In this document: positions 35,397 through 56,571 of the stretch, one piece after another
Numbering within the stretch: the stretch's first letter is position 1
How the letters are laid out: each line of letters opens with the position of its first letter
NCBI GenBank assembly: GCA_965112735.1
Contig: OZ218953.1
Span: forward strand, 4,588,001 to 4,652,000
From: Phaeosaccion multiseriatum
Taxonomy: Eukaryota; Protista; Ochrophyta, other classes
DNA length: 64,000 nt
Direction: 5' to 3'
Notes under the pieces: model-generated
Told to the model about the DNA's origin: nothing
Databases searched by the model: none
Seen by the model: the letters and a program-made list of their open reading frames with translations, nothing else
Made by a program: the position numbers and the translations under genes

Positions 35397-36530
35397 ATGT
35401 CTCTCTCCTGCCATCACCACGGCAAAGGTAGACTATTCCCCCGCGGATTTCGGTCCTGAGCGAAAGAAGAAAGCTTCCTCTCATCGCCCTGTTCCCTCCC
35501 TTTCTCTGCAGGCCGTGTGCGTGTGATGAAGGTACGCAGGACCCCGGAGCGCCACGAGGTGATGGAGCTTACCGTGGAGGTCATCCTCGTCGGGCCAGTG
35601 GACGAAGCCTTCAATGAAGGCGACAACACAAAGAGTGAGTAAGCCAGGGCGCCTCGCTCTCTGCCTTTATTTTCTGACGCCTCTTCCCCCCCTTACACCT
35701 CTCTGTACTTCTGGCAGCTATCCCCCTTCTCTCCTTTGACATCTTTTCTTCCTTCTTCCCCTCTCTTTGCACCCACAGTCGTTGCTACGGACACACAGAA
35801 GAACACCGTCTACGTCCTGGCGCAGCGCCACGACTTTACCTCTGCAGAGGAGTTTGCCCTGCTACTGGCTGAGCACTTTGTGACGACATACCTAGCAGCT
35901 GTACACAAGTGCAAGATCACCATCGACGAGGACATTTGGGAGCGGCATGTTGCCTGTCCTCCAGGCAGCATGGACAAGACCGCCCACCACCATGGCTTCA
36001 TGAAGAACAGCCCCATGCGGGGCTGGGTGTGCGCCACCGCGGAGACGAAGAAAGACGGGGCAGTGGACAAGACCCTCTCCGCGGGTGTTAGAAGCCTGAC
36101 GCTCCTCAAGACCACGCAGTCCTCCTTCAAGGGCTTCATCCGCGACGAGTACACCCTGCTCCCGGAGGTGGATGATCGCTTGCTGTCTTCGTCCATCGAC
36201 GCAGATTGGTCATACGACTTGGCGACAGCGCCTCCCTACGGCGAGGCTCGTGTAGCCGCGGTGGATGCCCTTGTGCACGGCTTCCTCGGGCCCGCCGATA
36301 CGGGAGTACCCAGTGCCAGTGTTCAGGCCACACTGCTGGACATGGGCAAGGCTGCCCTCGCCGCTGTACCGAGCATGACGAGCATATCCATACAGGCACC
36401 CAACATTCACAACCTTCCGTGGCAAGGCGATGCACTTGGGGTCAAGAACGAGGACGCCAGCGGAAAACCCGACGTGTTCATACCCACGAGCGAGCCCCAC
36501 GGCTTAATCTCCGCGACCGTCGAGAGACGA
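35397..36530 (+). other. UOX: Uricase (urate oxidase) domain of the fusion
   Basis: HGK, VATDTQKNTVY, signature LLKTTQSSFKGFIRDEYTLLPEVDDRLLS, SASVQATL, PNIH, PHGLISATVER. Confidence 0.95.
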
Positions 36531-39500
36531 AGAGGAGGAGGAGGAGGCGATGATGTTAATACAGTCTTGAACGCTTCTCGTCATTGTTCCTCCTACTACT
36601 CGTTTGAGGAATGCGTTCCTCCTGCGATGGGTAGTCGACTCCTCTCGCAAGCCGCAAGCGGCTCTACGATGAGGGGTGGTAACTCTTCTGGGATCCTCTT
36701 CGCTCTGGGCGTGCCCACACTGCGGGCACCGGAGCACGCTGCCTTGACCTTCCTGGCGAGTCTTGTGCACGGGGAAGTGAGTGGTCGCCTCTCCAAGCTT
36801 CTGCAGAGGCGCGCTGAGGACCGGAGGTTCATAGACCGCCGCTCTCGCTCCCTCGCAACCTGTGCGAACCTTGCTCCGACCACAACGTCGCTTCTTGGCC
36901 ACCAGGACCAGCACGGGAGGGTGGTGGTGGGCCCCCTCAGGACAGACTACGCTAGCGTGGCGGAGGAGGGCGAGCAGCCCGTCGCTCCCCTTCCTGCGCA
37001 CCTCGACCTGTCCACCTCCCATGTGACTGTGTTTGGCCCGGCGGACTCGGCGGAGGCCTGCAGGGAGTATCTACACGCATTTCAGGATAGCAGAACCAGC
37101 AGCAGTGGTAGCGGCAGCGGCAGCAGCGGCAGCAGCGGCGCGAATAAGGCAGGGAAGTGGGGGGCCGACCTGGAAGATTCACAGACTCCGTTTCCAGAGC
37201 TCGTGCAGGCTGCTGCCGAAAACTTGACCGAGAGCTACCGCCTGATTCGGGATGAGAACACTGGAGCGGCAGGGGCAGGGCACGGGGCTGGACTGTCCTT
37301 CCCTGTTGTGCGGCTGCCTGGCTTGGGGTTGCCTTCTACGCATGCCTTCATCGCCGCCTCAGGTACGCCCGTGCCCCTCCACCTCTTCATCTTCGCACTA
37401 CACGTGTTTCACAACTGGCAAGACCCCGCGGCGCGATGCTTCTACCTACCCAAGTTGGAGAACGAAGAGGAGGCGGCATACTTTGCCTTCCTCATTAAGC
37501 TCGCTGAGGAAAGGCTTAAGGAGCTCCATCCGTCATATGAAATGGGCTCGGTGCGCGTCTTTTGCGTGATTGAAAGCGGTCGTGCCATCTTCCGAGTGCG
37601 TGAGATTGCAGAGGCGCTGTACCCTTACTTCTGTGGCGCCAGTCTCGGATGGTAAGTCACTGTCAGCCCACTGCCAACCCATTTTCAACTCAAACACCCA
37701 CCGTCAACCCAACCCTTTTACCAACCCAGGCACGACTACTTGGCATCCACCTCTCGCCTCTTCAAGGAGGCCGAACACTGGATCATGCCTTCCAAAACAG
37801 ACCCAGACATAGTGGTCAAGCATATCCGCGCACAGCACGTGCTGCTAGGAGACGTGGTGGGGCGGGGCATGGGTGCTGTGAGCGTTGGTGGTATGTATGG
37901 CGTCGTCCCTGTGAGCGACGACCCCACTTCCGCTTCGTATCAAGTGAGTCTGCGCGGACTGTTCAAGGACGTGATTGCTCAGCTCAGACGCGGTTTGGTG
38001 GGGTTCTGGGTGGCGTATGCGCCCTTCGCCCGCATTGGAACTGAGATGGTTCGCGTGTGGCTGCTGGCAGAAGGAGGAGGTGGAGGTGGAGGCGGGGGAG
38101 GAGGAGGAGGAGGAGGAGGAGGAGGAGGCATCATGGAGGTGGTAAAGAGGCATCTCACCGTACCAGAGTATGTGGAGCAAGTAGCAGCCTTCCTTGCACA
38201 AGGAGACGAACAGAGGGAGGCAGCAGCAGCAGCAGCAGCAGCAGACTTGGTGCTTGACGAGAGCCCGAGGCGGCCGCCCAGTGGAGAGGCGCTCGAGTCG
38301 CTGCTTCGAGTCAACATCTCGCACTGCCTGGTCTACCTCAACGAATGGCTACAGGGCAGCGGGAACATCTCGCTGGAGTCCGAGATTGAAGGTGAGAGGA
38401 GGGAGAGGAAGGGTTTTGCTTTTGTTTGGGGAGGGGGGGGGGCGAATGAGTTGTCGAGTTGCGTTGTGGGGCCAAGTACTTTTGGCTTCGTAGTAACGGC
38501 ACCGCTCATGCCCTCCGCCAATGGACCACCGAAGAAGGAATCGCAGCTTAATGCCCTTCATCCTGACCCCGTCAGTATCTTGTTTGCTTGCATACGTTGC
38601 TTACTTGCTTGCTTGGCTGGCTTTGCTTGCTCTGCTTGCTACTTGCTTTGCTTTGCTTTGTGTGCTTGCTTTGCTTGCGTTGCTTGCCCTGCTTATTGCT
38701 GACTTGCTTTGCCCTGCTTTGTCCTGCTTTGCCCTGCTTAACATGGTCTGTTTCCTTGCCTTTGCTTGCTTGTCTCTTGCCACCACTCCAACTCAGGCAT
38801 TCCGGTGCGGGTGGTGGACGATCTCGCGACTGTGGAGCGGTCCCGCTGGAGTCTGTGGAGGGAGCTCAAGGCGGGCAGGCTGGGTATGAGCCGCTTCTTG
38901 ACAGCCACTTTCGAAGAGGCACTCAGTATCTCCAAGGCAAACACCAACAGCAACACCAACATCAACACAAACACCAACAAGCAGCAACAGCAGGGGAGCT
39001 CCTCCCCCCAGTTGGGCTCCCCAAAGTCAACGAAGTGGCAGTCCGTGGCCTTGGCCGTCTTTCTGAAGCTCATGACGGAGCTCGAGTCCCCCGCGGAGTT
39101 CGTGCCCGAGCTGCTCATGCCCTTCACGTCGGCCCTCATTCGGCAGGCTTCGGACCCGCTTGCTGCTATGCAGAGCTGCGGAGGAGACGAGATGCTGGTA
39201 CTCCGTCCACCCCTGAGGCAGTGGTGCTACTACTTTAAGATGTGTGGGTGTACGCGCTTTGCAGATGAGGTGTCACAGAGGGACGTGTTGCTAGATGTAC
39301 AACACGTCAAGCAGGTGATCGGGACCTTCAGCAAGGAGGAGGTTGTGCAGGCAGCCAACTTCAATGGAGATATCGGCGGCAGCCCCGAAGGGATGGACAG
39401 CTTGGCCAGAGAAGAGCAGGCTAAGGTGCTGAACGGAGAGGAGGGGGTGCGGCAGGCTCTGCGCGAGCTCGGGCAACAGTACCTTGCCAAATTCGACGGG

Positions 39501-42500
39501 ATGAAGTTCATGGTCTCGGCCAAAGGAAAGTCGGGGCCAGAGCTGCTTCCCCTTCTCGAGGCACGCATCAAGAACAGCGAGGAGCAGGAGGTGCAGCATG
39601 CGAGGGAGGCCCTTAGGGAGATCACAGTCAAGAGGCTGACCTCAAAGCCGCCCGACTGCGCAAGGGTCAGGATGGAGGCTCTCTTGGCCAAGCATGGAGT
39701 TGCTGGTGCGTCCATTGCCCTGGTGTCTAGCTCCTCTTCCTCCTCCTCCTCCCCCTCCTCCCTCTCCTCGGCCGCCGCCACCAAGACCCATCAGCAGCAG
39801 CACATTGTGCTGGGTCTACGGGACAAGGCCTCGGATGAGCCCGTCACAGCGGATACGTGCTTTGAAGTGGCGTCTCTGAGCAAGTCCGTGGGCACGGCGT
39901 TTAGCATGGAGTACTTTCGGTCGCGAGGCGTCTCCATCTTTGACACCCCTGCCAACGCATTGCTCAAGAAGGGGGGCTCCTCCTTCCGCCTGAGTGGGCC
40001 GTACGCAGAGGAAGTGATGCTGGTACACCTCATGTCACACTCGGCACTCAACCTGCACTACGTGAACGGAGTGCCGCTGGATAGGGAGGATGCGAATGGA
40101 GGCTTGCCCGACATTCGACTACTCATCGAGGGGTGCTCTGATCCCGTTTCGTACACGCCCATCGAAGGTGAGAGAGAGATGGAGAGAGAGAGGCACGGCA
40201 TATCATCAATGAGAGAGAGAGGCACGGCATATCATCAATGAGAGAGAGAGGCACGACGTGTCACCATTGTGGTGCTTGAGTCCCCTTCCTCACTTCCTTC
40301 TTGTGGCCTGTCTGCCTTTCACCATCTCTCCCTTCTGTCTCTATCCCCATCTCTCTCTCCCTTTCCTCTCTCTCTCTCTCTGTACCCCCCCTCTCTCTCG
40401 TCTCTCCCCCCTCACTCGCCCTCTCTCGTGTAGTGCTCGGCCCGCCCGGTGAGGTGTTCCGCTACAGCGGGGGAGGCTTCCTCGTGCTACAACACATCAT
40501 CGAGAGCCTGGAGGGCGGCAAGAGGAGCATCGCTTCCATCTCACAGCCCTTCATTGACAGCCTTTTCGGCACTGCTGTATCACCAACTGCTGCTGCTTCT
40601 GGTGCTACTACTGGTGGTCCCGATCCGGAAGTAGCCTCGTCCTCCCTCTTCACCTTCGACCCCAACCCCAACCCCAGCAGCAATTTCAAGGTGGCTTGCG
40701 GCTACGACAGCGAAGGCGCAGTCATCCCGGGCACGCGCCTCGTCTTCCCAGCGTTTGCTGCAGGAGCGTTGGCGACTCCGGCGGCCATCCTGCACTTCTT
40801 GCAGACCCTCAGCGCGGCCTACGCAGACCCGAGAGGAGGGGGAGGAGCGGGGGCACTCGCAGGCCCTATTTCGCACGACACGGCTGTACTCATGCTGCAC
40901 GGGACGGACAAGGGGTGCCTCGACTTTATGGGTTGTAAGATGGGGGTGGGTATCTTCACGGCAGAGGCGGGTGGGAATCGCTTTGCCGTCCACCAGGGGG
41001 CGAACGACGGTTTCCGCGCGCTCTTTTTGCACTGCTACAAGGGCCCTGACGTGGGGACGGGTGTTGTGGTGTGCGCCAATGGAGGCAACAAGGCCGTGGG
41101 CTTCATCAGTGAAGCGGTGCAGGAGGTGCTAAAAGTGCTCAAGGTTACGGGTGTGGACTGCCATCTCTTCGACCGCCCACCGCCTTCCCTCCAGCAGGGG
41201 GGTGCCAAGACGGTTGTCAAACAGGAGGACCTTGTCAATTTGGGCTATAAGCAAGCCCTCTTTTCGGCCTTCAGGCCCGACCTGCCCGCGAGAATCGAGG
41301 ACGTCGACCCCGAGGCCTCAACGGGTGCCAACGACCCGCGTTGGGAGTACAACGGAGCCCGAGACGCGAAGGTGGTGTGTGTCACCAACCAGGCCTTTGC
41401 ACGGGCGGACAACCTTTGCTCGGCGCGCTTACCACTCTTCGACCCGGCGTTGTTTGGCCCTCAGGGCAAGGTGATGGACAGTTGGGAGACCACCCGACAC
41501 AACCCGGCCGTGTGCGATGAGCTTGTGCTGGCCCTGAAGGAGAGCATGGCAGTGAGCTTTGTCATGCTCTCTACCAAGTACCACACCGGAAACAACTTCA
41601 AAGAGGTAGAGGTGTTGGGTTTCCAATCCGAGGCGGCGGCGGTGGCAGCGATGCTGACCAAGAGCGGCGCTTCCTCTGCTTCTGCTTTGGGTGCTGTGGA
41701 GGGGGAGGGAGTGGGAGGAGGAGCGGTGCTGCTGCTGCCCAGGCACATGCTGAAGGGCCACTCGGAGCTCCGGGTGACTGTGGACCCCTCCACCTCCACC
41801 AAACCTGTGTCGCACATTCTCGTGCGCGCCTTCCCAGACGGGGGGCTGACTCGACTCGGCCTCTTCGACCGGAGCCTGCCCCAGGCGTTTCTCGAGGGCT
41901 TTGCTCCTGCTGCAGAGGCCGTGCCCATCCCCTGCTCGGACCCCGTACCTGCGCCGCTCAAGCCCCTCGCGATGGAGTACAACACCCCCAGCGAGGAGGA
42001 CATTGCTGCCAATCTGGCGACGATTCAGGTCGGGGAGGAGTACAACGTGGCAGGAAGGGCCTTTGGAGGGCGCTTCGTGTCGGCCACCAACGAGCATTAC
42101 GGGCCTGCCAGTGCTGCCCTGAGCCCCTACCCTCCCCTCGACATGTTTGACGGTTTCGAGTCGGCCAGGAGCCACAACCGAGAGAACGAGGAGTGCATCA
42201 TCGTGGCGCTTGCCAAGCCCTGCCTTCTCCATCGCATCGAGCTCGACTTTACCTTTTTTGTCAACAACGCTCCTCTGGAAGTCGCCATCTGGGGCATTGA
42301 CGCAAGCAGTATGAGCGGCAGTACGAATGGCGGTGGCGGTGGCGGTGACTTGCCCTGGAGTGAGGCAGCGCAGATGGTGGGTCGAACGTGTGTCAAGGCC
42401 TTCGCGGCCAATGTCAAGACCTTCGAGTTCCGCGGCGAGCAGCAGCAGAAGGTGACGGTGGATCACCTCAAGATCTCGCTGTACCCTGACGGAGGAGTCA

Positions 42501-42532
42501 ACCGCATACGGGCCTTCACCATGAAGGAGTAA
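35397..42532 (+). CDS. Five-domain purine-catabolism fusion protein: uricase + malate synthase-like + OHCU decarboxylase + beta-lactamase-fold serine hydrolase + allantoicase (~2052 aa)
   Basis: Exons 35397-35427, 35512-35634, 35779-37651, 37730-38391, 38797-40167, 40434-42532; all GT-AG and phase-compatible; total 6159 nt = 2053 codons with no internal stop. Splicing restores conserved motifs across junctions (HGK|GRVRV, GDNTK|IVATDTQKN, GASLG|WHDY). Confidence 0.9.
36730..39150 (+). other. Divergent malate synthase-like TIM-barrel domain of the fusion
   Basis: TVFGP, ADLEDS, VVRLPG, FYLPKLENEEEA, CVIES, GASLGWHDYLAS, VGGMYG, GFWVA, NISHCLVYLNEWLQGSG, DDLATVERSRWSLW parallel malate synthase A motifs (DFEDS, YLPKLE, LIET, GRWDY, GGM, GTWVAHP, EDAATAEISR). 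Confidence 0.85.
39215..39640 (+). other. OHCU decarboxylase domain of the fusion (conserved His read as Asn in this copy)
   Basis: CGCTRFADEV, F(N)GDIG, AREEQAKV, L.ELG..Y..KF...FMVSA.GKS..E.L..LE.RI.N..EQE...A...L..I...RL fit the UraD family. Confidence 0.85.
39660..41140 (+). other. Beta-lactamase / serine hydrolase (class C, AmpC-like fold) domain of the fusion
   Basis: HGVAGASIALV, PVTADTCFEVASLSK (SxxK at 39873-39884), LMSHSAL, PPGEVFRYSGGGF, AAGALATP, HQGANDGF, GVVVCAN. Confidence 0.88.
41350..42529 (+). other. Allantoicase domain (two repeats) of the fusion
   Basis: TNQAFARADNL, GKVMDSWETTRHNP, TKYHTGN, FPDGGLTRL; second repeat GGRFVSATNEHYG, MFDGFESAR, FFVNNAP, LYPDGGVNRIRAF. Confidence 0.92.
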
Positions 42533-42792
42533 ATAGTGTGTATTGCATTGCTCTTTACATTAGTATATACATATTTACAAGTCCAAAGTGACACGCGACA
42601 GGGTGGTTTTCGCTTGCCATTGCCACACATATCCCTCTCTTTGCTCGCGGTTGCTTGTGCTGTGCTGACGCCCCCTTCAGTCACCCCTCAATCGAGCTGC
42701 TGGGCGTAAAGCACAAGAGGCAAAAGAAAGAGTTGTATGGTGTGAGGCTGAGCGCCTCTGCTCTGGGCCTTCACATGACTCAGGAGATGTGA

Positions 42793-43039
42793 CTAGCTGC
42801 CTCTGTAGGTGGAGTATCCAAACGGGTTCAGCAGCAAGGGCACATGGTAGTGCTCCGTGTCTGTGGTCTGGAACACGATTGACACCTCAGGATAGAAGCA
42901 CGCCGTACTGAGGCTCTCTTACATGTTGTAGCCGCCGGTATCGAAGTGCAGGCGATACACGCCTTGAGAAGGCACAGAGGAACGCACAGCAGGGAGCCGA
43001 GTAGCAGCAGCAGAACCAGAGCATCAGCACCACCACCAT

Positions 43040-43073
<34 letters not shown>

Positions 43074-43567
43074 GTACTCTCAGCGATGGTCAGTAAATGG
43101 CAAATTCCTGTCGCTCTTTTTTTCTTCTTCTATGCAGCAGGATACCACAACAAGGCCCAATCAATCCCGACCCCCCCTGCTGCTGGTCGTAAGTCTTCCT
43201 AAACTTTCCTCCCAGGTTCTCTCACCCGGCTCTAGAAGGACGTCGCTCTTCAGCAGATCCTTCACCCGCCCATCGTTGTCCGTCATCCTTTCGCTCGCCG
43301 CCCATGAGAGAGGAGGGTCGTAGAGAATAAGAAGGATTAGAAGAGCACGGGGGACCCGATCCGGAGCTCACACCCTCAAACAGCATTTGTTCTCTTTCTC
43401 CTCCTTACTCTATCAGATGTTGCTCACCCTCGGCAATGAGGGTCCATTCCTCTGTTGACTCCCCTGGCTGGTGGTCTCGCTCTGCTGCTGGGAGCGTGGG
43501 AGCGAGATCATCCTCACTCCCGCGGTAGGCTTTCCCAAGCTCATGTCCAGGATAGATACGAGAGGTA
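42793..43567 (-). pseudogene. HIU hydrolase pseudogene (copy in duplication unit 1)
   Basis: Retains ...[19 protein letters not shown]. However, the last exon reads GGC TAC AAC ATG TAA, an in-frame stop where the intact copy has GGC TAC TAC GAG. Exon 1 has indels and no matching start codon. Confidence 0.88.
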
Positions 43568-43655
43568 TTGAAATTTGAACCATGTAGTGGATTGCCCTTT
43601 TGGTGCCATCTGTGCTGCAAAAGTAACGACTTTTTACATCACCTCAACTTTTCCT

Positions 43656-44850: not shown

Positions 44851-47800
44851 ATGCCGCCCAATGCGGACGACCGGCAGGATAACGGAGTGGACGAGTGCAG
44901 GCAGCCGGCGAGGCGAGCTTTCAGAGGGTCAATCATACATTCGTTGGGCCTCGATGATCTTGAGATCGTCCCAGATGGGCTTATTATTGTCGATGCGGAT
45001 GGAGTTATTCTGCAGCTGCTGGACCTCAGCAGCGAGGAGAGCACTTTGGCCACTTCTCGCCTCTTCAAGGAGGCCGAACACTGGATCATGCCTTCCAAAA
45101 CAGACCCAGACATAGTGGTCAAGCATATCCGCGCACAACACGTGCTGCTAGGAGACGTGGTGGGGCGGGGCATGGGTGGTGTGAGCGTTGCTGGCATGTA
45201 TGGCGTCGTCCCTGTGAGCGACGACCCCACTTCCGCTTCGTATCAAGTGAGTCTGCGCGGACTGTTCAAGGACGTGATTGCTCAGCTCAGACGCGGTTTG
45301 GTGAGGTTCTGGGTGGCGTATGCGCCCTTCGCCCGCATTGGAACTGAGGTGGTTCGCGTGTGGCTGCTGGCAGAAGGAGGTGGAGGCGGAGGAGGAGGAG
45401 GAGGAGGAGGAGGAGGAGGCATCATGGAGGTGGTAAAGAGGCATCTCACCGTACCAGAGTATGTGGAGCAAGTAGCAGCCTTCCTTGCACAAGGAGACGA
45501 ACAGAGGGAGGCAGCAGCAGCAGCAGCAGCAGCAGACTTGGTGCTTGACGAGAGCCCGAGGCGGCCGCCCAGTGGAGAGGCGCTCGAGTCGCTGCTTCGA
45601 GTCAACATCTCGCACTGCCTGGTCTACCTCAACGAATGGCTACAGGGCAGCGGGAACATCTCGCTGGAGTCCGAGATTGAAGGTGAGAGGAGGGAGAGGA
45701 AGGGTTTTGCTTTTGTTTGGGGAGGGGGGGGGGCGAATGAGTTGTCGAGTTGCGTTGTGGGGCCAAGTACTTTTGGCTTCGTAGTAACGGCACCGCTCAT
45801 GCCCTCCGCCAATGGACCACCGAAGAAGGAATCGCAGCTTAATGCCCTTCATCCTGACCCCGTCAGTATCTTGTTTGCTTGCATACGTTGCTTACTTGCT
45901 TGCTTGGCTGGCTTTGCTTGCTCTGCTTGCTACTTGCTTTGCTTTGCTTTGTGTGCTTGCTTTGCTTGCGTTGCTTGCCCTGCTTATTGCTGACTTGCTT
46001 TGCCCTGCTTTGTCCTGCTTTGCCCTGCTTAACATGGTCTGTTTCCTTGCCTTTGCTTGCTTGTCTCTTGCCACCACTCCAACTCAGGCATTCCGGTGCG
46101 GGTGGTGGACGATCTCGCGACTGTGGAGCGGTCCCGCTGGAGTCTGTGGAGGGAGCTCAAGGCGGGCAGGCTGGGTATGAGCCGCTTCTTGACGGCCACT
46201 TTCGAAGCGGCACATCGCATCTCCAAGGCAAACACCAACACCGTCACCAACAAGCAGAAGCAGCAGCAGCAGCAGCAACAGCAGGGGAGCTCCTCCCCCC
46301 AGTTGGGCTCCCCAAAGTCAACGAAGTGGCAGTCCGTGGCCTTGGCCGTCTTTCTGAAGCTCATGACGGAGCTCGAGTCCCCCGCGGAGTTCGTGCCCGA
46401 GCTGCTCATGCCCTTCACGTCGGCCCTCATTCGGCAGGCTTCGGACCCGCTTGCTGCTATGCAGAGCTGCGGAGGAGACGAGATGCTGGTACTCCGTCCA
46501 CCCCTGAGGCAGTGGTGCTACTACTTTGAGATGTGTGGGTGTACGCGCTTTGCAGATGAGGTGTCACAGAGGGACGTGTTGCTAGATGTACAACACGTCA
46601 AGCAGGTGATAGGGACCTTCAGCAAGGAGGAGGTTATGCAGGCAGCCAGCTTCCATGGAGATATCGGCGGCAGCCCCGTAGGGATGGACAGCATGGCCAG
46701 AGAAGAGCAGGCTAAGGTGCTGAACGGAGAGGAGGGGGTGCGGCAGGCTCTGCGCGAGCTCGGGCAACGGTACCTTGCCAAATTCGACGGGCTGAAGTTC
46801 ATGGTCTCGGCCAAAGGAAAGTCGGGGCCAGAGCTGCTTGCCCTTCTCGAGGCACGCATCAAGAACAGCGAGGAGCAGGAGGTGCAGCATGCGAGGGAGG
46901 CCCTTAGGGAGATCACAGTCAAGAGGCTGACCTCAAAGCCGCCCGACTGCGCAAGGGTCAGGATGGAGGCTCTCTTGGCCAAGCATGGAGTTGCTGGTGC
47001 GTCCATTGCCCTGGTGTCTAGCTCCTCTTCCTCCTCCTCCTCCCCCTCCTCCCTCTCCTCGGCCGCCGCCACCAAGACCCATCAGCAGCAGCACATTGTG
47101 CTGGGTCTACGGGACAAGGCCTCGGATGAGCCCGTCACAGCGGATACGTGCTTTGAAGTGGCGTCTCTGAGCAAGTCCGTGGGCACGGCGTTTAGCATGG
47201 AGTACTTTCGGTCGCGAGGCGTCTCCATCTTTGACACCCCTGCCAACGCATTGCTCAAGAAGGGGGGCTCCTCCTTCCGCCTGAGTGGGCCGTACGCAGA
47301 GGAAGTGATGCTGGTACACCTCATGTCACACTCGGCACTCAACCTGCACTACGTGAACGGAGTGCCGCTGGATAGGGAGGATGCGAATGGAGGCTTGCCC
47401 GACATTCGACTACTCATCGAGGGGTGCTCTGATCCCGTTTCGTACACGCCCATCGAAGGTGAGAGAGAGATGGAGAGAGAGAGGCACGGCTTATCATCAA
47501 TGAGAGAGAGCGAGGCACGGCATATCATCAATGAGAGAGAGAGGCACGGCATATCATCAATGAGAGAGAGAGGCACGGCATATCATCAATGAGAGAGAGA
47601 GGCACGACGTGTCACCATTGTGGTGCTTGAGTCCCCTTCCTCACTTCCTTCTTGTGGCCTGTCTGCCTTTCACCATCTCTCCCTTCTGTCTCTATCCCCA
47701 TCTCTCTCTCCCTTTCCTCTCTCTCTCTCTGTACCCCCCCTCTCTCTCGTCTCTCCCCCCTCACTCGCCCTCTCTCGTGTAGTGCTCGGCCCGCCCGGTG

Positions 47801-49881
47801 AGGTGTTCCGCTACAGCGGGGGAGGCTTCCTCGTGCTACAACACATCATCGAGAGCCTGGAGGGCGGCAAGAGGAGCATCGCTTCCATCTCACAGCCCTT
47901 CATTGACAGCCTTTTCGGCACTGCTGTATCACCAACTGCTGCTGCTTCTGGTGCTACTACTGGTGGTCCCGATCCGGAAGTAGCCTCGTCCTCCCTCTTC
48001 ACCTTCGACCCCAACCCCAACCACAGCAGCAATTTCATGGTGGCTTGCGGCTACGACAGCGAAGGCGCAGTCATCCCGGGCACGCGCCTCGTCTTCCCAG
48101 CGTTTGCTGCAGGAGCGTTGGCGACTCCGGCGGCCATCCTGCACTTCTTGCAGACCCTCAGCGCGGCCTACGCAGACCCGAGAGGAGGGGGAGGAGCGGG
48201 GGCACTCGCAGGCCCTATTTCGCACGACACGGCTGTACTCATGCTGCACGGGACGGACAAGGGGTGCCTCGACTTTATGGGTTGTAAGATGGGGGTGGGT
48301 ATCTTCACGGCAGAGGCGGGTGGGAATCGCTTTGCCGTCCACCAGGGGGCGAACGACGGTTTCCGCGCGCTCTTTTTGCACTGCTACAAGGGCCCTGACG
48401 TGGGGACGGGTGTTGTGGTGTGCGCCAATGGAGGCAACAAGGCCGTGGGCTTCATCAGTGAAGCGGTGCAGGAGGTGCTAAAAGTGCTCAAGGTTACGGG
48501 TGTGGACTGCCATCTCTTCGACCGCCCACCGCCTTCCCTCCAGCAGGGGGGTGCCAAGACGGTTGTCAAACAGGAGGACCTTGTCAATTTGGGCTATAAG
48601 CAAGCCCTCTTTTCGGCCTTCAGGCCCGACCTGCCCGCGAGAATCGAGGACGTCGACCCCGAGGCCTCAACGGGTGCCAACGACCCGCGTTGGGAGTACA
48701 ACGGAGCCCGAGACGCAAAGGTGGTGTGTGTCACCAACCAGGCCTTTGCACGGGCGGACAACCTTTGCTCGGCGCGCTTACCACTCTTCGACCCGGCGCT
48801 GTTTGGCCCTCAGGGCAAGGTGATGGACAGTTGGGAGACCACCCGACACAACCCGGCCGTGTGCGATGAGCTTGTGCTGGCCCTGAAGGAGAGCATGGCA
48901 GTGAGCTTTGTCATGCTCTCTACCAAGTACCACACCGGAAACAACTTCAAAGAGGTAGAGGTGTTGGGTTTCCAATCCGAGGCGGCGGCGGTGGCAGCGA
49001 TGCTGACCAAGAGCGGCGCTTCCTCTGCTTCTGCTTTGGGTGCTGTGGAGGGGGAGGGAGTGGGAGGAGGAGCGGTGCTGCTGCTGCCCAGGCACATGCT
49101 GAAGGGCCACTCGGAGCTCCGGGTGACTGTGGACCCCTCCACCTCCACCAAACCTGTGTCGCACATTCTCGTGCGCGCCTTCCCAGACGGGGGGCTGACT
49201 CGACTCGGCCTCTTCGACCGGAGCCTGCCCCAGGCGTTTCTCGAGGGCTTTGCTCCTGCTGCAGAGGCCGTGCCCATCCCCTGCTCGGACCCCGTACCTG
49301 CGCCGCTCAAGCCCCTCGCGATGGAGTACAACACCCCCAGCGAGGAGGACATTGCTGCCAATCTGGCGACGATTCAGGTCGGGGAGGAGTACAACGTGGC
49401 AGGAAGGGCCTTTGGAGGGCGCTTCGTGTCGGCCACCAACGAGCATTACGGGCCTGCCAGTGCTGCCCTGAGCCCCTACCCTCCCCTCGACATGTTTGAC
49501 GGTTTCGAGTCGGCCAGGAGCCACAACCGAGAGAACGAGGAGTGCATCATCGTGGCGCTTGCCAAGCCCTGCCTTCTCCATCGCATCGAGCTCGACTTTA
49601 CCTTTTTTGTCAACAACGCTCCTCTGGAAGTCGCCATCTGGGGCCTTGACGCAAGCAGTATGAGCGGCAGTACGAATGGCGGTGGCGGTGGCGGTGACTT
49701 GCCCTGGAGTGAGGCAGCGCAGATGGTGGGTCGAACGTGTGTCAAGGCCTTCGCGGCCAATGTCAAGACCTTCGAGTTCCGCGGCGAGCAGCAGCAGAAG
49801 GTGATGGTGGATCACCTCAAGATCTCGCTGTACCCTGACGGAGGAGTCAACCGCATACGGGCCTTCACCATGAAGGAGTAA
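44851..49881 (+). CDS. Chimeric gene: guanine deaminase N-terminal 67 aa fused in frame to the malate synthase C-half + OHCU decarboxylase + beta-lactamase-like domain + allantoicase (~1433 aa)
   Basis: Exons 44851-45682, 46088-47458, 47783-49881 (4302 nt, open). MPPNAD...SSEESTLA matches the protein starting at 51387; TSRLFKEAEHW onward matches the fusion gene. Confidence 0.82.
47474..47607. repeat. ~29-31 bp intronic minisatellite (GAGAGAGAGGCACGGCATATCATCAAT): about 4 units here, about 2 in the paralogous intron (40183-40256)
   Basis: Direct reading of both introns. Confidence 0.8.
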
Positions 49882-50141: not shown

Positions 50142-50382
50142 CTAGCTGCCTCTGTAGGTGGAGTATCCAAACGGGTTCAGCAGCAAGGGCACATGGTAGT
50201 GCTCCGTGTCTGTGGTCTGGAACACGATTGACACCTCAGGATAGAAGCACGCCGTACTGAGGCTCTCGTAGTAGCCGCCGGTATCGAAGTGCAGGCGATA
50301 CACGCCTTGAGAAGGTACAGAGGAACGCACAGCAGGGAGCCGAGTAGCAGCAGCAGAACCAGAGCATCAGCACCACCACCAT

Positions 50383-50419
<37 letters not shown>

Positions 50420-50879
50420 GTACTCTTACTCTCAGCGATGGTCAGTAAATGGCAAATTCCTGTCGCTCTTTTTTTCTTCTTCTATGCAGCAGGATACCAC
50501 AACAAGGCCCAATCAATCCCGACCCCCCCTGCTGCTGGTCGTAAGTCTTCCTAAACTTTTCTCCCAGGTTCTCTCACCCGGCTCTAGAAGGACGTCGCTC
50601 TTCAGCAGATCCTTCACCCGCCCATCATTGTCCGTCACCCCTTCGCCGCCCATGAGAGGAGGAGGGTAGAGAACAACACAAGTGAGCGACCTGACTGGAA
50701 GAGCACGGGGGACCCGAAGCTCATTCATTTGTTCCTTACTCTATCAGATGTTGCTCACCCTCGGCAATGAGGTTCCACTCCCCTGTTGACTCCCCTGGCC
50801 TCTGCAGGGAGATCCTCACTCCCGTGGCAGGCTTTCCCAGGCTCGTGTCCAGGATATGCGAGGTGATCTGGCTCACCAT
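50142..50879 (-). CDS. uraH: 5-hydroxyisourate (HIU) hydrolase, transthyretin-like, 115 aa (exons 50759-50879, 50578-50640, 50142-50305)
   Basis: [18 protein letters not shown]|VTDNDGR, G|[36 protein letters not shown] (YRGS signature). Confidence 0.93.
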
Positions 50880-51386
50880 ACTCCACGCAGCAGCAGAGCA
50901 AGAGCCAAAGGGAAATAGAATGGGGGAAGAGTGAGCGTAAAAGTGTAAAAGTAATGGATGGCAACTAACGGCTTCGTGCGTGCCAAACTCCGAAAGTTCG
51001 ATCAAAGTTCCCGCCCTCAATTATTTTTCCCTTTCTTCCTTAAAGCCAGGGCTTATACAGCCGACAGATACAAAGGTAGATGCACAAATAATGAGTCTCT
51101 ACCCTTCTTTCCTTAGTTTAATGCGCTGTGTCCACAGGAGCCCTGTTGCTGCTAACCATTCCGTACATAACCTTAAGTTCGTCAGAACAACTCCTCACAA
51201 TCCTTTCCTTCCTCTCCCCCTCTCCACCTCCTCTCTTCCTTCCTCAACCTTAAAACTGATGAACTTCTCACAGTCCTTCCCCACCTCCCCCACTCTCCAA
51301 TTCCGCTCTTCCTTCCTCACAGCATCCCTACTATTCAGCGCCAAGTCTTCGACTGACCAAAGCTGTTACGCTGCTGAGCGGGGGGC
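50880..51386. promoter_or_regulatory. Putative bidirectional promoter shared by HIU hydrolase and guanine deaminase
   Basis: 507-bp head-to-head spacer between two genes of the same pathway; a diverged copy lies upstream of the chimera (~44497-44850). Confidence 0.5.
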
Positions 51387-54300
51387 ATGCCGCCCAATGC
51401 GGACGCCCACCAGGATAACGGAGTGGACGAGTGCAGGCATCCGGCGAGGCGAGCTTTCAGAGGGTCAATCATACACTCGTTGGACCTCGATGATCTTGAG
51501 ATCATCGCGGATGGGCTTATTATTATCGACGCGGATGGAGTCATTCTGCAGCTGCTGGACCTCAGCAGCGAGGAGAGCACTTTGGCCCTGGAGAGAGACT
51601 TCTCGGAGATTGAGATCGCAGACCACAGCGGGCAGCTCATCATCCCGGGCATGATTGATGCTCACTGCCACGCACCTCAGCACCTCTTTGCCGGGACGGG
51701 CATGGACCTGCCGCTGCTGGATTGGTTGGAGCGATACACCTTCCCCACGGAGGCCAAATTCTCAGATGAGAGCATGGCTGCTGAAGTGAGCATAGACCAG
51801 AGCTTCGAGATAGAGCAGTAGGAGAGGCCTACCTCGCTTTGCAGAGTGGAGTACGCGCGCGCCCTTTCTCTCTCCCTCCCTCTCTCTCTCTCTCTGTGTG
51901 TGTGTGTATGTGTTTCTCTCTCCTTCACTCACTGTCGGTCATTCTCTGCTGGAACACACGTCGCGCCCCCACCTACCCCTCTCCGCGTCCCTCCAGGTTT
52001 ACGAGAAGGTCGTTGCTCGCCACCTCAAGTCCGGCACAACCTTTGCCTCTTACTTCGCGACCATCCACACAAACGCAAGTATAGCTCTGGCTCAGGCATG
52101 CAACAAGGCCGGCCAGCGCGCGTACATTGGCAAGGTTACAATGGACCGCAACAGCCCGGACTTCTACATTGAGGAGGCCGATGAGGCTGTCAAGGAAGCA
52201 GAGAGCTTTGCGGTTAAGGTGCTCAACATGAACGCGGTGAGTGGGCGGGTCTGAGGCGCAGAGGTTGCTCTGCCTGTTCCGTGTCCTCCTCGCCCCTTTC
52301 TTCTCTGACTCTCCCCCTCTCTTTGTCTCCCTGTGTCTGTCTCTCTGTATCTCTCTCTGTCTCTGACTGTGTGTGTGCCTCTCGCTCTCTCTCGCGCGCT
52401 CTCCCTCTCTACTGTCTCTCTCACGACGCAGCGCGGCGCCAAGCACTCTGCCGACTGCGAGGCCTTCTGGAGGGGGGAGAGCAGTGAACCCCCCCCTCCG
52501 CTGCTCAACCAGAGACACACACCCACTGTGCTACCGTGTATCACTCCGCGCTTTGTGCCCTCTTGCACGGGGGCTACGATGGAAGGCCTTGGGAACATCG
52601 CGAAGAAGTTCACTTTGCCTGTGCAGGTACGCACCAAACACGCATGCATTACGTATCATCACACACACGCACATACACGCACACACACGCGCAAGTACAC
52701 ACACACAAGCACACATACACATATGACATACACATATCACATACACACAGGCAAGAACACACACACACACATAAGCACACACACAAACGAAACGGGGAAA
52801 TCAGCGCGGAGAATTAAGAGGAGGAAGCAAAGGCGCAAGCCAAGCGTATCCACCAAACTCAAGCCCTTCCTCCACGACCTGTCCCTCCGCCCACCCCTTA
52901 CTCCTCATCTTCAGTCGCACTTGAGTGAGAACCCAGACGAGATTGCGTGGGTGAGTGAGCTCCACCCCGACTGCGAGACATACGCGCATGTGTACGAGAA
53001 GTACAATTTACTCGGCCCCTCTTCCTTCATGGCCCACTGCTGCCACTCGCCCGAGACGGAGCTGACACTGCTCGCGAAGTCTCAGACCGGAGTAGTGCAC
53101 TGCCCCTCGTCGAACCTGATGTTGTGTTCGGGTATCGCGGATATCAAGGTAAAGGCTTCACATTCAGTCCATCACTCCCTTCCTCATTTCATTACTCCCT
53201 CACTTCCTCACTCACTCACTCACTCACTCACTCACTCACTCACTCACATACACACTCATTCACTCTTTCCCTCACGTACTCACCCACTCCCTCCCTCTCT
53301 CTCTCCCTCACTCCTTCTCTTGCTTCCCCACAAATTCCCTCCCTGCCTCCTTTCCTTAGAAAATGTTGAGTATGGGCATCAATGTTGGGATCGGTACGGA
53401 TGTGGCTGGAGGCTTCAGCCCGAGTATGTTCGATGCAATGCGCCTCACCCTCCAGTCTTCCCGGTGAGTGGGATGAGAGTGAGTGAGTGAGTGAGTGAGT
53501 GAGTGAGTGAGTGAGTGAGTGAGCGAGCGAGCTTGCCTCGCTCCTCCGCCTGATCGACCAAATCTCTTCAGAACCCCGCCCTTCTTACTTTTATCCATAT
53601 CTCACTGTGGCTTTCCTTATCGTAACTTGCTCGCTGCCTCCACCTCAATCCTCAACACCTTCATATACAACCTGAAGAGCTCACGCGCTGGCCAAGTATC
53701 AGAGTCCGCTAGCGACACCCCAGACACGTAAGTTCAACACTTAGTTCAACACTTTCCTCCTTCTGGTCCAAACTACATGTGCCCGTTCGCCCTCCTCCGT
53801 TTCTGTCTTATCTTGTGCCCCCCTCCCCTCGCCGACCCCCCGATCTCCTCATTTTACTTTTTCGCTCTTCTGCGTTGTTCACAAAAGGTGTGTCGATTGC
53901 GGACACTCTGAGCGTCCGAGAAGTATTCTACTTGGCCACCGTGGGGAACGCACAGGTGTTGGGCAACGGTAAGATGCTCGGCAACTTCCTCCCCGGCAAG
54001 AAGCTCGATGCGCTGGTGGTGAATGTGGACACAGGGGCAAGCTTCGACGTGTTTGGGCATGAAGGGCTCGAGGAGCTCTTCTCCAAGTTCATCTTTCAAG
54101 GCGACGATCGGTGCATCAGCAGCGTCATTGTCAATGGGGAATATGTGCTGGGCAGGGAGAAGGCAGTGGCGGTTACGTCCGAAGAGTCGTTTGCCTCTCA
54201 TGCCGCGATTGAGACGGTGCATGTGCTGGAGGAGATGGAGAAGACTTTCAACAAGCGAGTGCAGGATAGTTCCAACTTTATCAAGACGGCCCACCCTGCC

Positions 54301-55093: not shown

Positions 55094-56571
55094 TCAGACC
55101 TCGGCCAAGTGGGACGAGTCGGGTGTGAGCCGAGCTTGTGTGCGGTACAGCTCTCTGTGGTGCTTCCCGTCATTGTTGAAGGGCATGGCCTTGTGCAGCG
55201 TCTGTGTGTTGTCCCAGAACACAACGTCTCCCCTGCGCCACTTGTGGTAGTAGGTGAAGGAGGGGCCAGTGGAGTGATCGATCACCATGGTGAGTAGCCT
55301 GCCGGCGTCCTCCTTGGACAACATCAACTCCTTCTCCTTGGCCTCGTCTTGGCCTTGGTACCGCATAACTTTCATGTGTGGGGACCCTACGTAGAGGTTC
55401 GGCTTCCCGTCTCCCGAGGGGTGCGTGTCGATGATGGGATGCCTGACTTCAGGGAAGGCGGCCAGTTCCTCTTCAACCCCGTTACGCGTGAAGTCAGCCT
55501 TGCGGTCAATGAGTGAAAAGCGCGTGTGTGTGTGCGTGCGTCAATGCGAGTGCGTGAGTTAGTCTGTGAGTGAGTGAGTGGGCGAGCGAATGAAAGGGAG
55601 AGAATAGAAAAGGAGGGAGTGGACGTGGACCTTCGAACGACTTACAATGTCTCGCACAGAAGCCACGATGACCTTATCCTGCACTAGCTGCATGAGAGAA
55701 GCTGAGAGGGTGTCACGTGCCATCCGTATGTCTGCGAAGCCCGTCTGGCCTCCGTAGCCCCCGGGAGGCGCCTGTTCCGAGTAGAGGAGAGAGACAAGGT
55801 AGCGCTTCTCCCGGGTCCAAAACTGGCCATCCTGATGCCAATAAGCGCCGAAGCTGTGCGAGGGACCTAAGGGCGTGTGTTGGTTGACAGACACCAAAAG
55901 AGTACAGGGTCAATCCGTGTCTCTCAAAGAGACCACACCCCTCGCCAGACGGATCTACATGCACTGCGCCGGTCTACTTACCCTTCCAGGTACCGTTGCC
56001 CCCCCAGAAGTTGGTAACGCGCTGAATGGCGGGCTCTCCTGGCTCGGGATCTCTTCCCTCGAAGGAGGGGGGGAGGACCACTACCTCGCCGATCCTACCC
56101 GTGAGCTCTACCTTTTGGCGGAGAACGGGTAGCGAGGTGGTTAATATCGAATATCGACTAAACTACCAAGAAGCAGACAGAGGCGTCGGACCCACCTGCT
56201 CGTGCCTCGTCAGGTTCTGCCCAGGAACCACCACCACTCCGTAGTCGTGGATCGCCTGAAGAATGGGGCGATGAGAGAGTGAAAAAAGTAAAGGAAGTCG
56301 TAAGGAAAAATCGAGAGGTGCCATCACAGAAACCGAAAGTATTGTGTACCTGCAGTAAGAAGGTTAGCTTCGCGTCATCCATTTCCTTCAGATCTCCCAT
56401 GTCCAGCAGCTCAGCACCCAGCCGTTCCGTCGCTCCGCAGAGGCCGTTGTCGCAAGCGCCCAGCACATCTTTATTGCGCCTCCCGATGTGGCCACATGTC
56501 TCTTCACCGTCCGAAGCCGCGGCGTAAAGGAAAAGGAAACCCACCACGGCCCACACCCAGAGCTTGATCAT
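55094..56571 (-). CDS. TauD/TfdA-family Fe(II)/2-oxoglutarate dioxygenase with N-terminal signal peptide (5 exons)
   Basis: LGAEL, AIHDYGVVVVPGQNLTRHEQ, WHQDG (HxD), GGQTGFAD, HPIIDTHP...LYVG, YYHKWRRGDVVFWDNTQTLHKA...RELYRT; hydrophobic N-terminus MIKLWVWAVVGFLFLYAAA. Confidence 0.9.

Follow-up and report, generated by a model that had tools for sequence, protein, structure and literature searches.

A beta-lactamase-fold domain fused to purine-catabolic enzymes in an ochrophyte alga and in Bdellovibrionota: a candidate third class of allantoinase

Within a 64,000-nucleotide stretch of the genome of the ochrophyte alga Phaeosaccion multiseriatum (contig OZ218953.1 of assembly GCA_965112735.1, positions 4,588,001 to 4,652,000; referred to as the window and numbered from its first nucleotide), we identified a plus-strand gene, predicted to be spliced into a single transcript, in which Pfam recognizes five domains: uricase, a malate-synthase-like (MSL) domain, OHCU decarboxylase, a serine beta-lactamase-like (BL) domain of family PF00144, and allantoicase. 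In the encoded polypeptide, BL is positioned between OHCU decarboxylase, which makes allantoin, and allantoicase, which uses allantoate. Both the algal cluster and the bacterial clusters that carry related genes encode a recognizable enzyme for each step from urate to ureidoglycolate except the conversion of allantoin to allantoate, and the domains in these clusters that have no assigned step are BL and, besides it, MSL. BL is most likely a catalytically competent serine amidohydrolase that was recruited to purine catabolism and acts as an allantoinase; we infer its substrate and reaction by eliminating the other steps and from the conservation of the fusion and its operon setting. The preliminary description of this DNA had already proposed a serine-nucleophile allantoinase, and comparative genomics (the fusion, the operons, and the lack of a neighboring canonical allantoinase) supports that interpretation, whose chances we judge to be somewhat better than even.

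The window sequence is eukaryotic in character, containing GT..AG introns and low-complexity insertions, and the fusion gene extends over several plus-strand open reading frames (ORFs). In Pfam searches, the ORF at 35736-37655 matched uricase and the malate-synthase TIM barrel, the ORF at 37740-38702 matched further malate-synthase barrel, the ORF at 38766-40241 matched OHCU_decarbox (E 1.9e-18) and the first half of Beta-lactamase (E 4e-7), and the ORF at 40301-42532 matched the second half of Beta-lactamase (E 1e-5) and a two-repeat Allantoicase (E 1.3e-42). The uricase domain (35736-36560; PF01014, E 4.3e-37, best stretch residues 116-258 of its ORF) forms the N-terminus, and is followed by the MSL domain (37305-39194; PF01274), which is encoded by several exons and to which a bacterial MSL seed aligned at 37437-38375 and 38799-39194 in tblastn. 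The OHCU decarboxylase domain (39228-39650; PF09349, 47% identical to a bacterial seed in tblastn) lies directly upstream of BL in the same exon, while the allantoicase domain (41360-42532; PF03561, tblastn match 41360-42517), with its two repeats and the stop codon, completes the gene.

BL itself is encoded by two exons, which were delineated by Pfam, sequence reading and comparison with homologues. Exon A (39660-40167) contains the SLSK motif (39873-39884) and a poly-Ser insertion, whereas exon B (40434-41170) contains the FRYSGGG motif (40457-40477, with YSG at 40463-40471), a low-complexity insertion at ~40560-40690, and the HQGANDGF motif (40991-41014, with HQG at 40991-40999). Sequence reading confirmed all three motifs at the positions claimed for them previously, and the accompanying claim of an intact serine beta-lactamase-like domain between OHCU decarboxylase and allantoicase is borne out by Pfam, the motifs and the homologues. 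The earlier reading did not include the phase-1 intron that splits the domain (40168-40433; GTGAG...TAG, CT/GA-rich), which was located by sequence reading and gap-free homologue alignment. The spliced sequence across the junction is ..YTPIE-V-LGPPGEVFRYSGGG and aligns without gaps to 38 intron-free homologues, from which the algal domain differs solely in the poly-Ser insertion and an Ala/Ser/Pro-rich insertion. The summed contig depth of public reads rises ~150-200-fold (to ~1,000-34,000, depending on the run) over the (GCT)n-like low-complexity insertion at 40534-40664, an excess that almost certainly stems from other genomic occurrences of this simple repeat.

Conservation of at least 90% across the 38 homologues and the window extends to the key residues of all three motifs (Ser and Lys in SxxK, Tyr in motif 2, His and Gly in HQG) and to ~60 further positions of the domain, a pattern that points to a functional enzyme dedicated to a single substrate. 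The SxxK motif (S46/K49) aligns with that of the R61 DD-peptidase. In motif 2 (Y-x-N), the Tyr is invariant and the Asn is replaced by Gly, such that YSG stands opposite the YSN of R61 in the profile alignment. Motif 3 of R61 is HTG; the HQG of the BL family is invariant and has the same H-x-G form, and it would be the equivalent of HTG as judged from strand position in a structural model, since the R61 profile alignment does not include this motif. The family has signatures of its own (HxALNxHYVNG, FPAFAAG, ISHDTA and HQGANDGFR), and its invariant polar residues (R83, H97, N101, H103, Y104, H235, D246, N269, N278 and R282, in the domain numbering of P0042, a bacterial homologue) would suit a small, highly polar substrate. 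The nearest sequence outgroup consists of ~480-residue bacterial serine hydrolases, one cluster of which has a member named for DUF3471; they share the SxSK and YSGGG motifs and are without HQGANDG and HYVNG. Since YSGGG is thus not confined to the BL family, the suggestion that YSG signals a changed substrate pocket is rejected as family-specific evidence.

Profile searches and structural modeling place BL in the serine beta-lactamase/DD-peptidase fold (PF00144 / MEROPS S12), which is two-lobed, with an alpha/beta and an all-alpha part. The two half-domains of the window score 30.0 bits (exon A) and 25.3 bits (exon B) against a Pfam gathering cut-off of 27 bits, compared with 44-88 bits for intact homologues, and the best homologue matches of BL reach E 1e-56, well outside what chance would produce. 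When the family profile was compared with the PDB, the best match was the R61 DD-peptidase (E 6e-10); this match came from the family profile, as a phmmer search of the PDB with the exon B piece alone returned no match. Because the window domain is split by an intron, the fold evidence is drawn from residues 555-892 of homologue P0042, which share 43-51% identity with the two pieces of the window domain and for which the AlphaFold (AF2) model has a mean pLDDT of 95.6. Foldseek comparison of this model with the PDB gave matches at E 2e-20 to 1e-16 with TM values of 0.7-0.76 and 15-21% identity, the top matches being the IS11 esterase, Pab87, the R61 DD-peptidase and class C beta-lactamases. Searches of NCBIfam, the ESM Atlas and Swiss-Prot structures returned only generic beta-lactamase-family labels for BL. 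Several more specific identities were considered and rejected. BL falls outside the class C beta-lactamases (AmpC) proper, as its score with the NCBIfam bla_class_C model is 25-32 bits, where the cut-off is 415, and YSG and HQG replace YxN and KTG. It is not an allantoinase of the AllB/DAL1 type (no PF01979 or TIGR03178 match) or of the PuuE type (no PF01522 match in Pfam), its fold being beta-lactamase-like in either case, and it is not a transthyretin-type 5-hydroxyisourate (HIU) hydrolase, which has a different fold and of which a genuine example, ending in YRGS, is encoded next door.

The BL family is, as judged from its sequences, tight and usually fused to allantoicase. Most of the 80 proteins returned by the BL search carry both PF00144 and PF03561, often together with PF09349 and malate-synthase domains, and they are named in their sources as 'serine hydrolase', 'allantoicase/CubicO group peptidase' ('CubicO group peptidase' at JGI) or 'galactose-binding domain-like protein'. 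In a library clustered at 50% identity, exhaustive searching with the profile yielded 469 BL clusters at E<=1e-30. Eukaryotic members occur in the chytrid-like fungus Hyaloraphidium curvatum, the brown alga Ectocarpus fasciculatus, the dinoflagellate Biecheleria cincta, the copepod Oithona nana (a BL-allantoicase fusion in the P0075 cluster) and, as a standalone form of ~450 residues, the transcriptome of the haptophyte Phaeocystis cordata (P0102); this patchy spread suggests transfers or repeated losses. Among prokaryotes, a scan of GTDB species genomes produced 220 BL matches, mostly from Bdellovibrionota and including the isolate Oligoflexus tunisiensis Shr3.

To describe the bacterial context, the best 80 of the 220 GTDB matches were taken with up to 10 kb of sequence on each side (1070 ORFs in total), and operon neighbors were counted in the 37 loci that have at least 5 kb on both sides. 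BL and allantoicase share one ORF in every one of the 80 loci, and in 77 of them this ORF encodes all four domains in the order MSL, OHCU decarboxylase, BL and allantoicase (~1550 residues). Among the 37 well-flanked loci, a transthyretin-type HIU hydrolase is present in 31, at a median distance of 4 bp from the fusion ORF, a PuuD-type urate oxidase in 32, and xanthine dehydrogenase (Xdh) in ~14; loci L002, L005 and L006 are annotated examples of such purine operons. The preliminary description had proposed checking whether the closest homologues sit in purine-degradation operons of genomes lacking allB and puuE. The check came out in its favor as far as the operons are concerned, with neither gene adjacent, and closest homologues without a link to purine catabolism, which it had named as counter-evidence, were not encountered. 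Loci L007-L086 show a compact urate operon composed of PuuD urate oxidase, HIU hydrolase and the four-domain fusion, an arrangement that in predatory bacteria fits the salvage of prey nucleic acids. Also frequent near these fusions are xanthine dehydrogenase, S1/P1 nuclease and two kinds of guanine deaminase, of which the amidohydrolase type occurs in 3 loci and one with the cytidine-deaminase fold in 11. In the TARA contig of locus L002 (7731-12223), the BL-allantoicase ORF (P0007) starts with the last ~43 residues of OHCU decarboxylase and is preceded by a malate-synthase-like ORF, so that a frameshift or an assembly error seems to have divided this four-domain gene.

A canonical allantoinase was sought in the same bacterial loci and in the window. 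When E. coli AllB was compared with the 1070 bacterial ORFs using phmmer, a single match was obtained, and this ORF (L034:17193-18590) is a dihydropyrimidinase, as it scores 608 bits with TIGR02033 and 284 bits with the allantoinase model, below the cut-off of 358. Amidohydro_1 is represented by one recurrent cluster, found in 3 loci, which is guanine deaminase; Polysacc_deac_1 is absent from the 25 most frequent families among 150 neighboring ORFs of PuuE size (240-380 residues), and no further neighbor family is seen in over 13 of the 80 loci. In the alga, the cluster comprises uricase, HIU hydrolase, OHCU decarboxylase, allantoicase, MSL and guanine deaminase, with no allantoinase. The only AllB tblastn match in the window, at 51501-51671, is the N-terminus of this guanine deaminase, identified by its TIGR02967 pieces, and not an allantoinase. 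Pfam analysis of 147 open segments of at least 120 residues outside 35.4-54.6 kb revealed eight families, with neither Amidohydro_1 nor Polysacc_deac_1 among them. Together, the AllB tblastn search and the Pfam analysis uphold, for the 64-kb window, the earlier statement that no AllB or PuuE enzyme is encoded there.

The other domain without an assigned step, MSL, bears on the reaction that follows allantoicase. Ureidoglycolate is converted to glyoxylate and urea in a lyase reaction that also proceeds spontaneously, whereas allantoin is chemically stable and an enzyme is needed to open its ring. The bacterial MSL homologues retain R166, E250, D278, W365 and D447 of AceB and carry an R276W substitution, and MSL scores 75 bits with the NCBIfam malate synthase A model, far below the cut-off of 594. 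On this basis, MSL could be a ureidoglycolate lyase or a divergent malate synthase. In zebrafish, experiments have proven that the ureidoglycolate lyase is a malate-synthase-like protein in which R276 is substituted (PMC10120013), and allantoicase is reported to act on ureidoglycolate in the title of reference 42 of that paper. Both of these points weaken the alternative raised in the preliminary description, namely that BL acts on ureidoglycolate.

We favor an allantoinase role for BL because allantoin, being stable, needs to be opened to feed allantoicase, and because acyl-enzyme chemistry fits the hydrolysis of a ring amide that releases a carboxylate. Enzymes of the beta-lactamase/DD-peptidase fold hydrolyze the C-N bonds of amides and lactams via an acyl-enzyme, and the opening of the allantoin ring yields a carboxylate, as released by this mechanism. 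In the proposed reaction, the OHCU decarboxylase domain just upstream would hand allantoin to BL, where the serine of SLSK would attack the C4 carbonyl of the hydantoin ring; ring opening would then generate an allantoyl-enzyme ester, from which a water molecule, activated by the YSG tyrosine together with the SLSK lysine, would release allantoate. The downstream allantoicase domain would convert allantoate to ureidoglycolate and urea, and MSL would handle ureidoglycolate or glyoxylate. If so, and we think the balance tips moderately toward it, BL would represent a third, evolutionarily independent class of allantoinase that has a beta-lactamase/DD-peptidase fold, works through a covalent acyl-enzyme within a four- or five-domain urate-to-glyoxylate multi-enzyme, and is widespread in predatory Bdellovibrionota and scattered among eukaryotes of marine and fresh waters. 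Several points weigh against this assignment. We know of no serine beta-lactamase-fold enzyme that opens a hydantoin ring, and the order of the domains in the polypeptide departs from the order of the pathway, with uricase and MSL coming first. Of the catalytic residues that were checked, MSL has lost only R276, and should it prove to be a genuine malate synthase, the cleavage of ureidoglycolate would be a second unassigned step. Genes for AllB or PuuE may lie elsewhere, as the search covered 10-kb bacterial flanks and one 64-kb algal window. Finally, the splice and the single five-domain transcript are predicted from homology; four public read runs with window DNA cover the intron at 40168-40433 and look like genomic DNA.

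The conserved fusion and operon context would fit any role in the purine pathway, and BL could accordingly act on another amide of the ureide pathway (as a ureidoglycolate amidohydrolase, or in clearing a side product or the wrong enantiomer, such as (R)-allantoin or what forms when HIU or OHCU breaks down spontaneously), with a canonical allantoinase encoded elsewhere. The retention of malate-synthase catalytic residues in MSL, which may leave ureidoglycolate cleavage with no dedicated enzyme, and the restriction of the allB/puuE search to locus flanks and the window are both compatible with this explanation. We nevertheless consider it unlikely, since ureidoglycolate is cleaved by a lyase reaction rather than by acyl-enzyme chemistry and decays spontaneously while allantoin does not, the malate-synthase-like protein of zebrafish is a proven lyase for it (PMC10120013), allantoicase is reported to take it as well (by the title of reference 42 therein), and an allantoinase is co-located in none of the 80 operons, though other steps are. 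Less likely still is that BL keeps an ancestral activity with no connection to purines, either that of an S12 'CubicO' D-stereospecific peptidase or that of a family VIII esterase, or that it serves mainly as a structural or oligomerization module. Such a role would agree with the identity of the closest structures (esterase IS11, octameric Pab87 and the R61 DD-peptidase), with the generic, uncharacterized serine hydrolases that form the nearest outgroup, and with the standalone forms in eukaryotic transcriptomes such as that of Phaeocystis cordata. However, an ancestral activity is at odds with a fusion to allantoicase that occurs in all 80 bacterial loci examined out of the 220 scan matches, and also in fungi, brown algae, dinoflagellates and a copepod, and a structural module is at odds with the conservation of the Ser, Lys, Tyr and His-x-Gly residues and of ~60 other positions at the level of at least 90%.

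The notion that BL is an analog of HIU hydrolase, opening the six-membered ring of 5-hydroxyisourate, draws on the fact that HIU hydrolysis also cleaves a cyclic amide and that Pfam finds no transthyretin domain in the algal fusion protein. This possibility is very remote, and we reject it, because a transthyretin-type HIU hydrolase gene adjoins the fusion both in the alga, where it is intact beside the second gene copy described below, and in 31 of the 37 well-flanked bacterial loci, at the median spacing of 4 bp given above. BL is thus not needed for the HIU step.

The region surrounding the algal gene contains additional purine-related features that were missed in the earlier reading, namely a second tandem copy of BL, an HIU hydrolase gene and a guanine deaminase gene. 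The fusion protein does not cover the whole local pathway, HIU hydrolase and guanine deaminase being encoded by genes of their own. A tandem duplication with a period of 7.29-7.35 kb is present, and the second, near-identical BL copy is located 7.3 kb downstream of the first on the plus strand (46951-48519; exon A 46951-47458, a longer intron, and exon B 47783-48519), inside gene copy 2 (44851-49881). Between the two BL copies there are no substitutions in exon A and 2 in exon B, both within the low-complexity insertion. Both copy variants are present in public reads at similar depth, indicating that the duplication is not an assembly artifact. Over 39228-42535, 16 substitutions separate the gene copies, and 10 of them fall inside a 313-nucleotide part of the OHCU decarboxylase domain (39237-39549 versus 46528-46840), a cluster for which divergent selection on that domain or gene conversion in patches could be responsible. 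Duplication of the fusion gene included the HIU hydrolase gene, and one minus-strand copy directly follows each. The intact transthyretin-type copy (50145-50890, minus strand; tblastn with a bacterial transthyretin seed, E 1.5e-13) is convergent with gene copy 2 and has three exons, of which the first (ORF 50736-51020) matches positions 2-38 of NCBIfam TIGR02962; its product ends in ...YRGS. The copy beside gene copy 1 (42796-43620, minus strand) is degraded: its last exon matches positions 79-113 of TIGR02962, it contains an in-frame TAA (GGYNM*ESLS), its exon 1 has undergone a frame change, and the His of the N-terminal HILD motif is lost.

Further downstream, a plus-strand guanine deaminase gene of at least four exons (51387-54200) is recognized by TIGR02967 pieces that cover positions 2-92, 90-169, 202-311 and 321-401 of the model. 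Its first exon (~66 codons) is duplicated on the plus strand at 44851-45050, where it runs into the MSL domain of gene copy 2, and with this exon at its start, gene copy 2 is a chimera of guanine deaminase exon 1 with MSL, OHCU decarboxylase, BL and allantoicase that has no uricase. Past the guanine deaminase gene, the minus strand at 55097-55897 encodes a dioxygenase of the TauD/TfdA family, assigned via translation of the ORF (PF02668, E 6.5e-21). In fungi, the TauD-family enzyme XanA converts xanthine to urate, and if the algal dioxygenase acts like XanA, the cluster would span the pathway from guanine to glyoxylate.

Allantoinase catalyzes a textbook step of purine nitrogen recycling for which, to our knowledge, only two enzyme classes are known. 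If the proposed role of BL is true, a serine-based third class would fill an apparent pathway gap in Bdellovibrionota and in several eukaryotic lineages, the annotations 'serine hydrolase', 'CubicO peptidase' and 'galactose-binding domain-like protein' would be corrected, and the inference of ureide and urea fluxes from marine and freshwater metagenomes would change. Hydantoin-ring opening would also extend the range of chemistry carried out by the beta-lactamase fold, a point of possible interest for hydantoinase biocatalysis. The fusion offers a ready experimental system, as one polypeptide is predicted to take OHCU through to glyoxylate.

Compared with known enzymes, BL combines a familiar fold with an unfamiliar context. 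By the model comparison, R61 DD-peptidase and the class C beta-lactamases have the same fold (Foldseek E ~1e-17, TM 0.71-0.73), and R61 resembles BL in its SxxK nucleophile, its motif 2 Tyr and, if HQG is the equivalent of its HTG, the HxG form of its motif 3; BL differs from these enzymes in sharing only 15-20% identity with them, in having Gly in place of the Asn of YxN, in its own invariant motifs and in its fusion to purine-catabolic enzymes. The best structural matches, with E values of 2e-20 and 2e-17 and a TM of 0.76, are Pab87, the 'CubicO' penicillin-binding protein homologue of Pyrococcus abyssi (2qmi), and esterase IS11 (7spn). Members of the BL family are either fused to allantoicase or standalone, and the ~480-residue serine hydrolases of the outgroup are set apart from them by the absence of the HQGANDG and HYVNG signatures. 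The reaction proposed for BL, allantoin to allantoate, is the same as that of AllB/DAL1, a binuclear metal TIM-barrel cyclic amidohydrolase, and as that of PuuE, a metal-independent enzyme of the polysaccharide-deacetylase fold. BL differs from both in fold and has no sequence or structural relationship to either, and the catalytic principle proposed for it, in contrast to theirs, is a covalent serine acyl-enzyme. The genomic logic is similar to that by which Ramazzina et al. 2008 reportedly identified PuuE, from purine gene clusters without allB. Gene association likewise led to the zebrafish enzyme, in which the malate synthase fold was recruited to a missing purine step (PMC10120013), and the Urah-Urad 'allantoin synthase' of plants, diatoms and bacteria joins consecutive urate-pathway enzymes in one chain (PMC13751858). 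The BL domain is unmentioned in these two papers, and a full-text literature search, which extended to work available without subscription, found no beta-lactamase-fold protein linked to allantoin or allantoicase and no description of the fusion. The multi-enzymes described here differ from the Urah-Urad and zebrafish systems in the number of fused domains, which is four in the bacterial proteins and five in the algal one, and in that HIU hydrolase is encoded by a separate gene.

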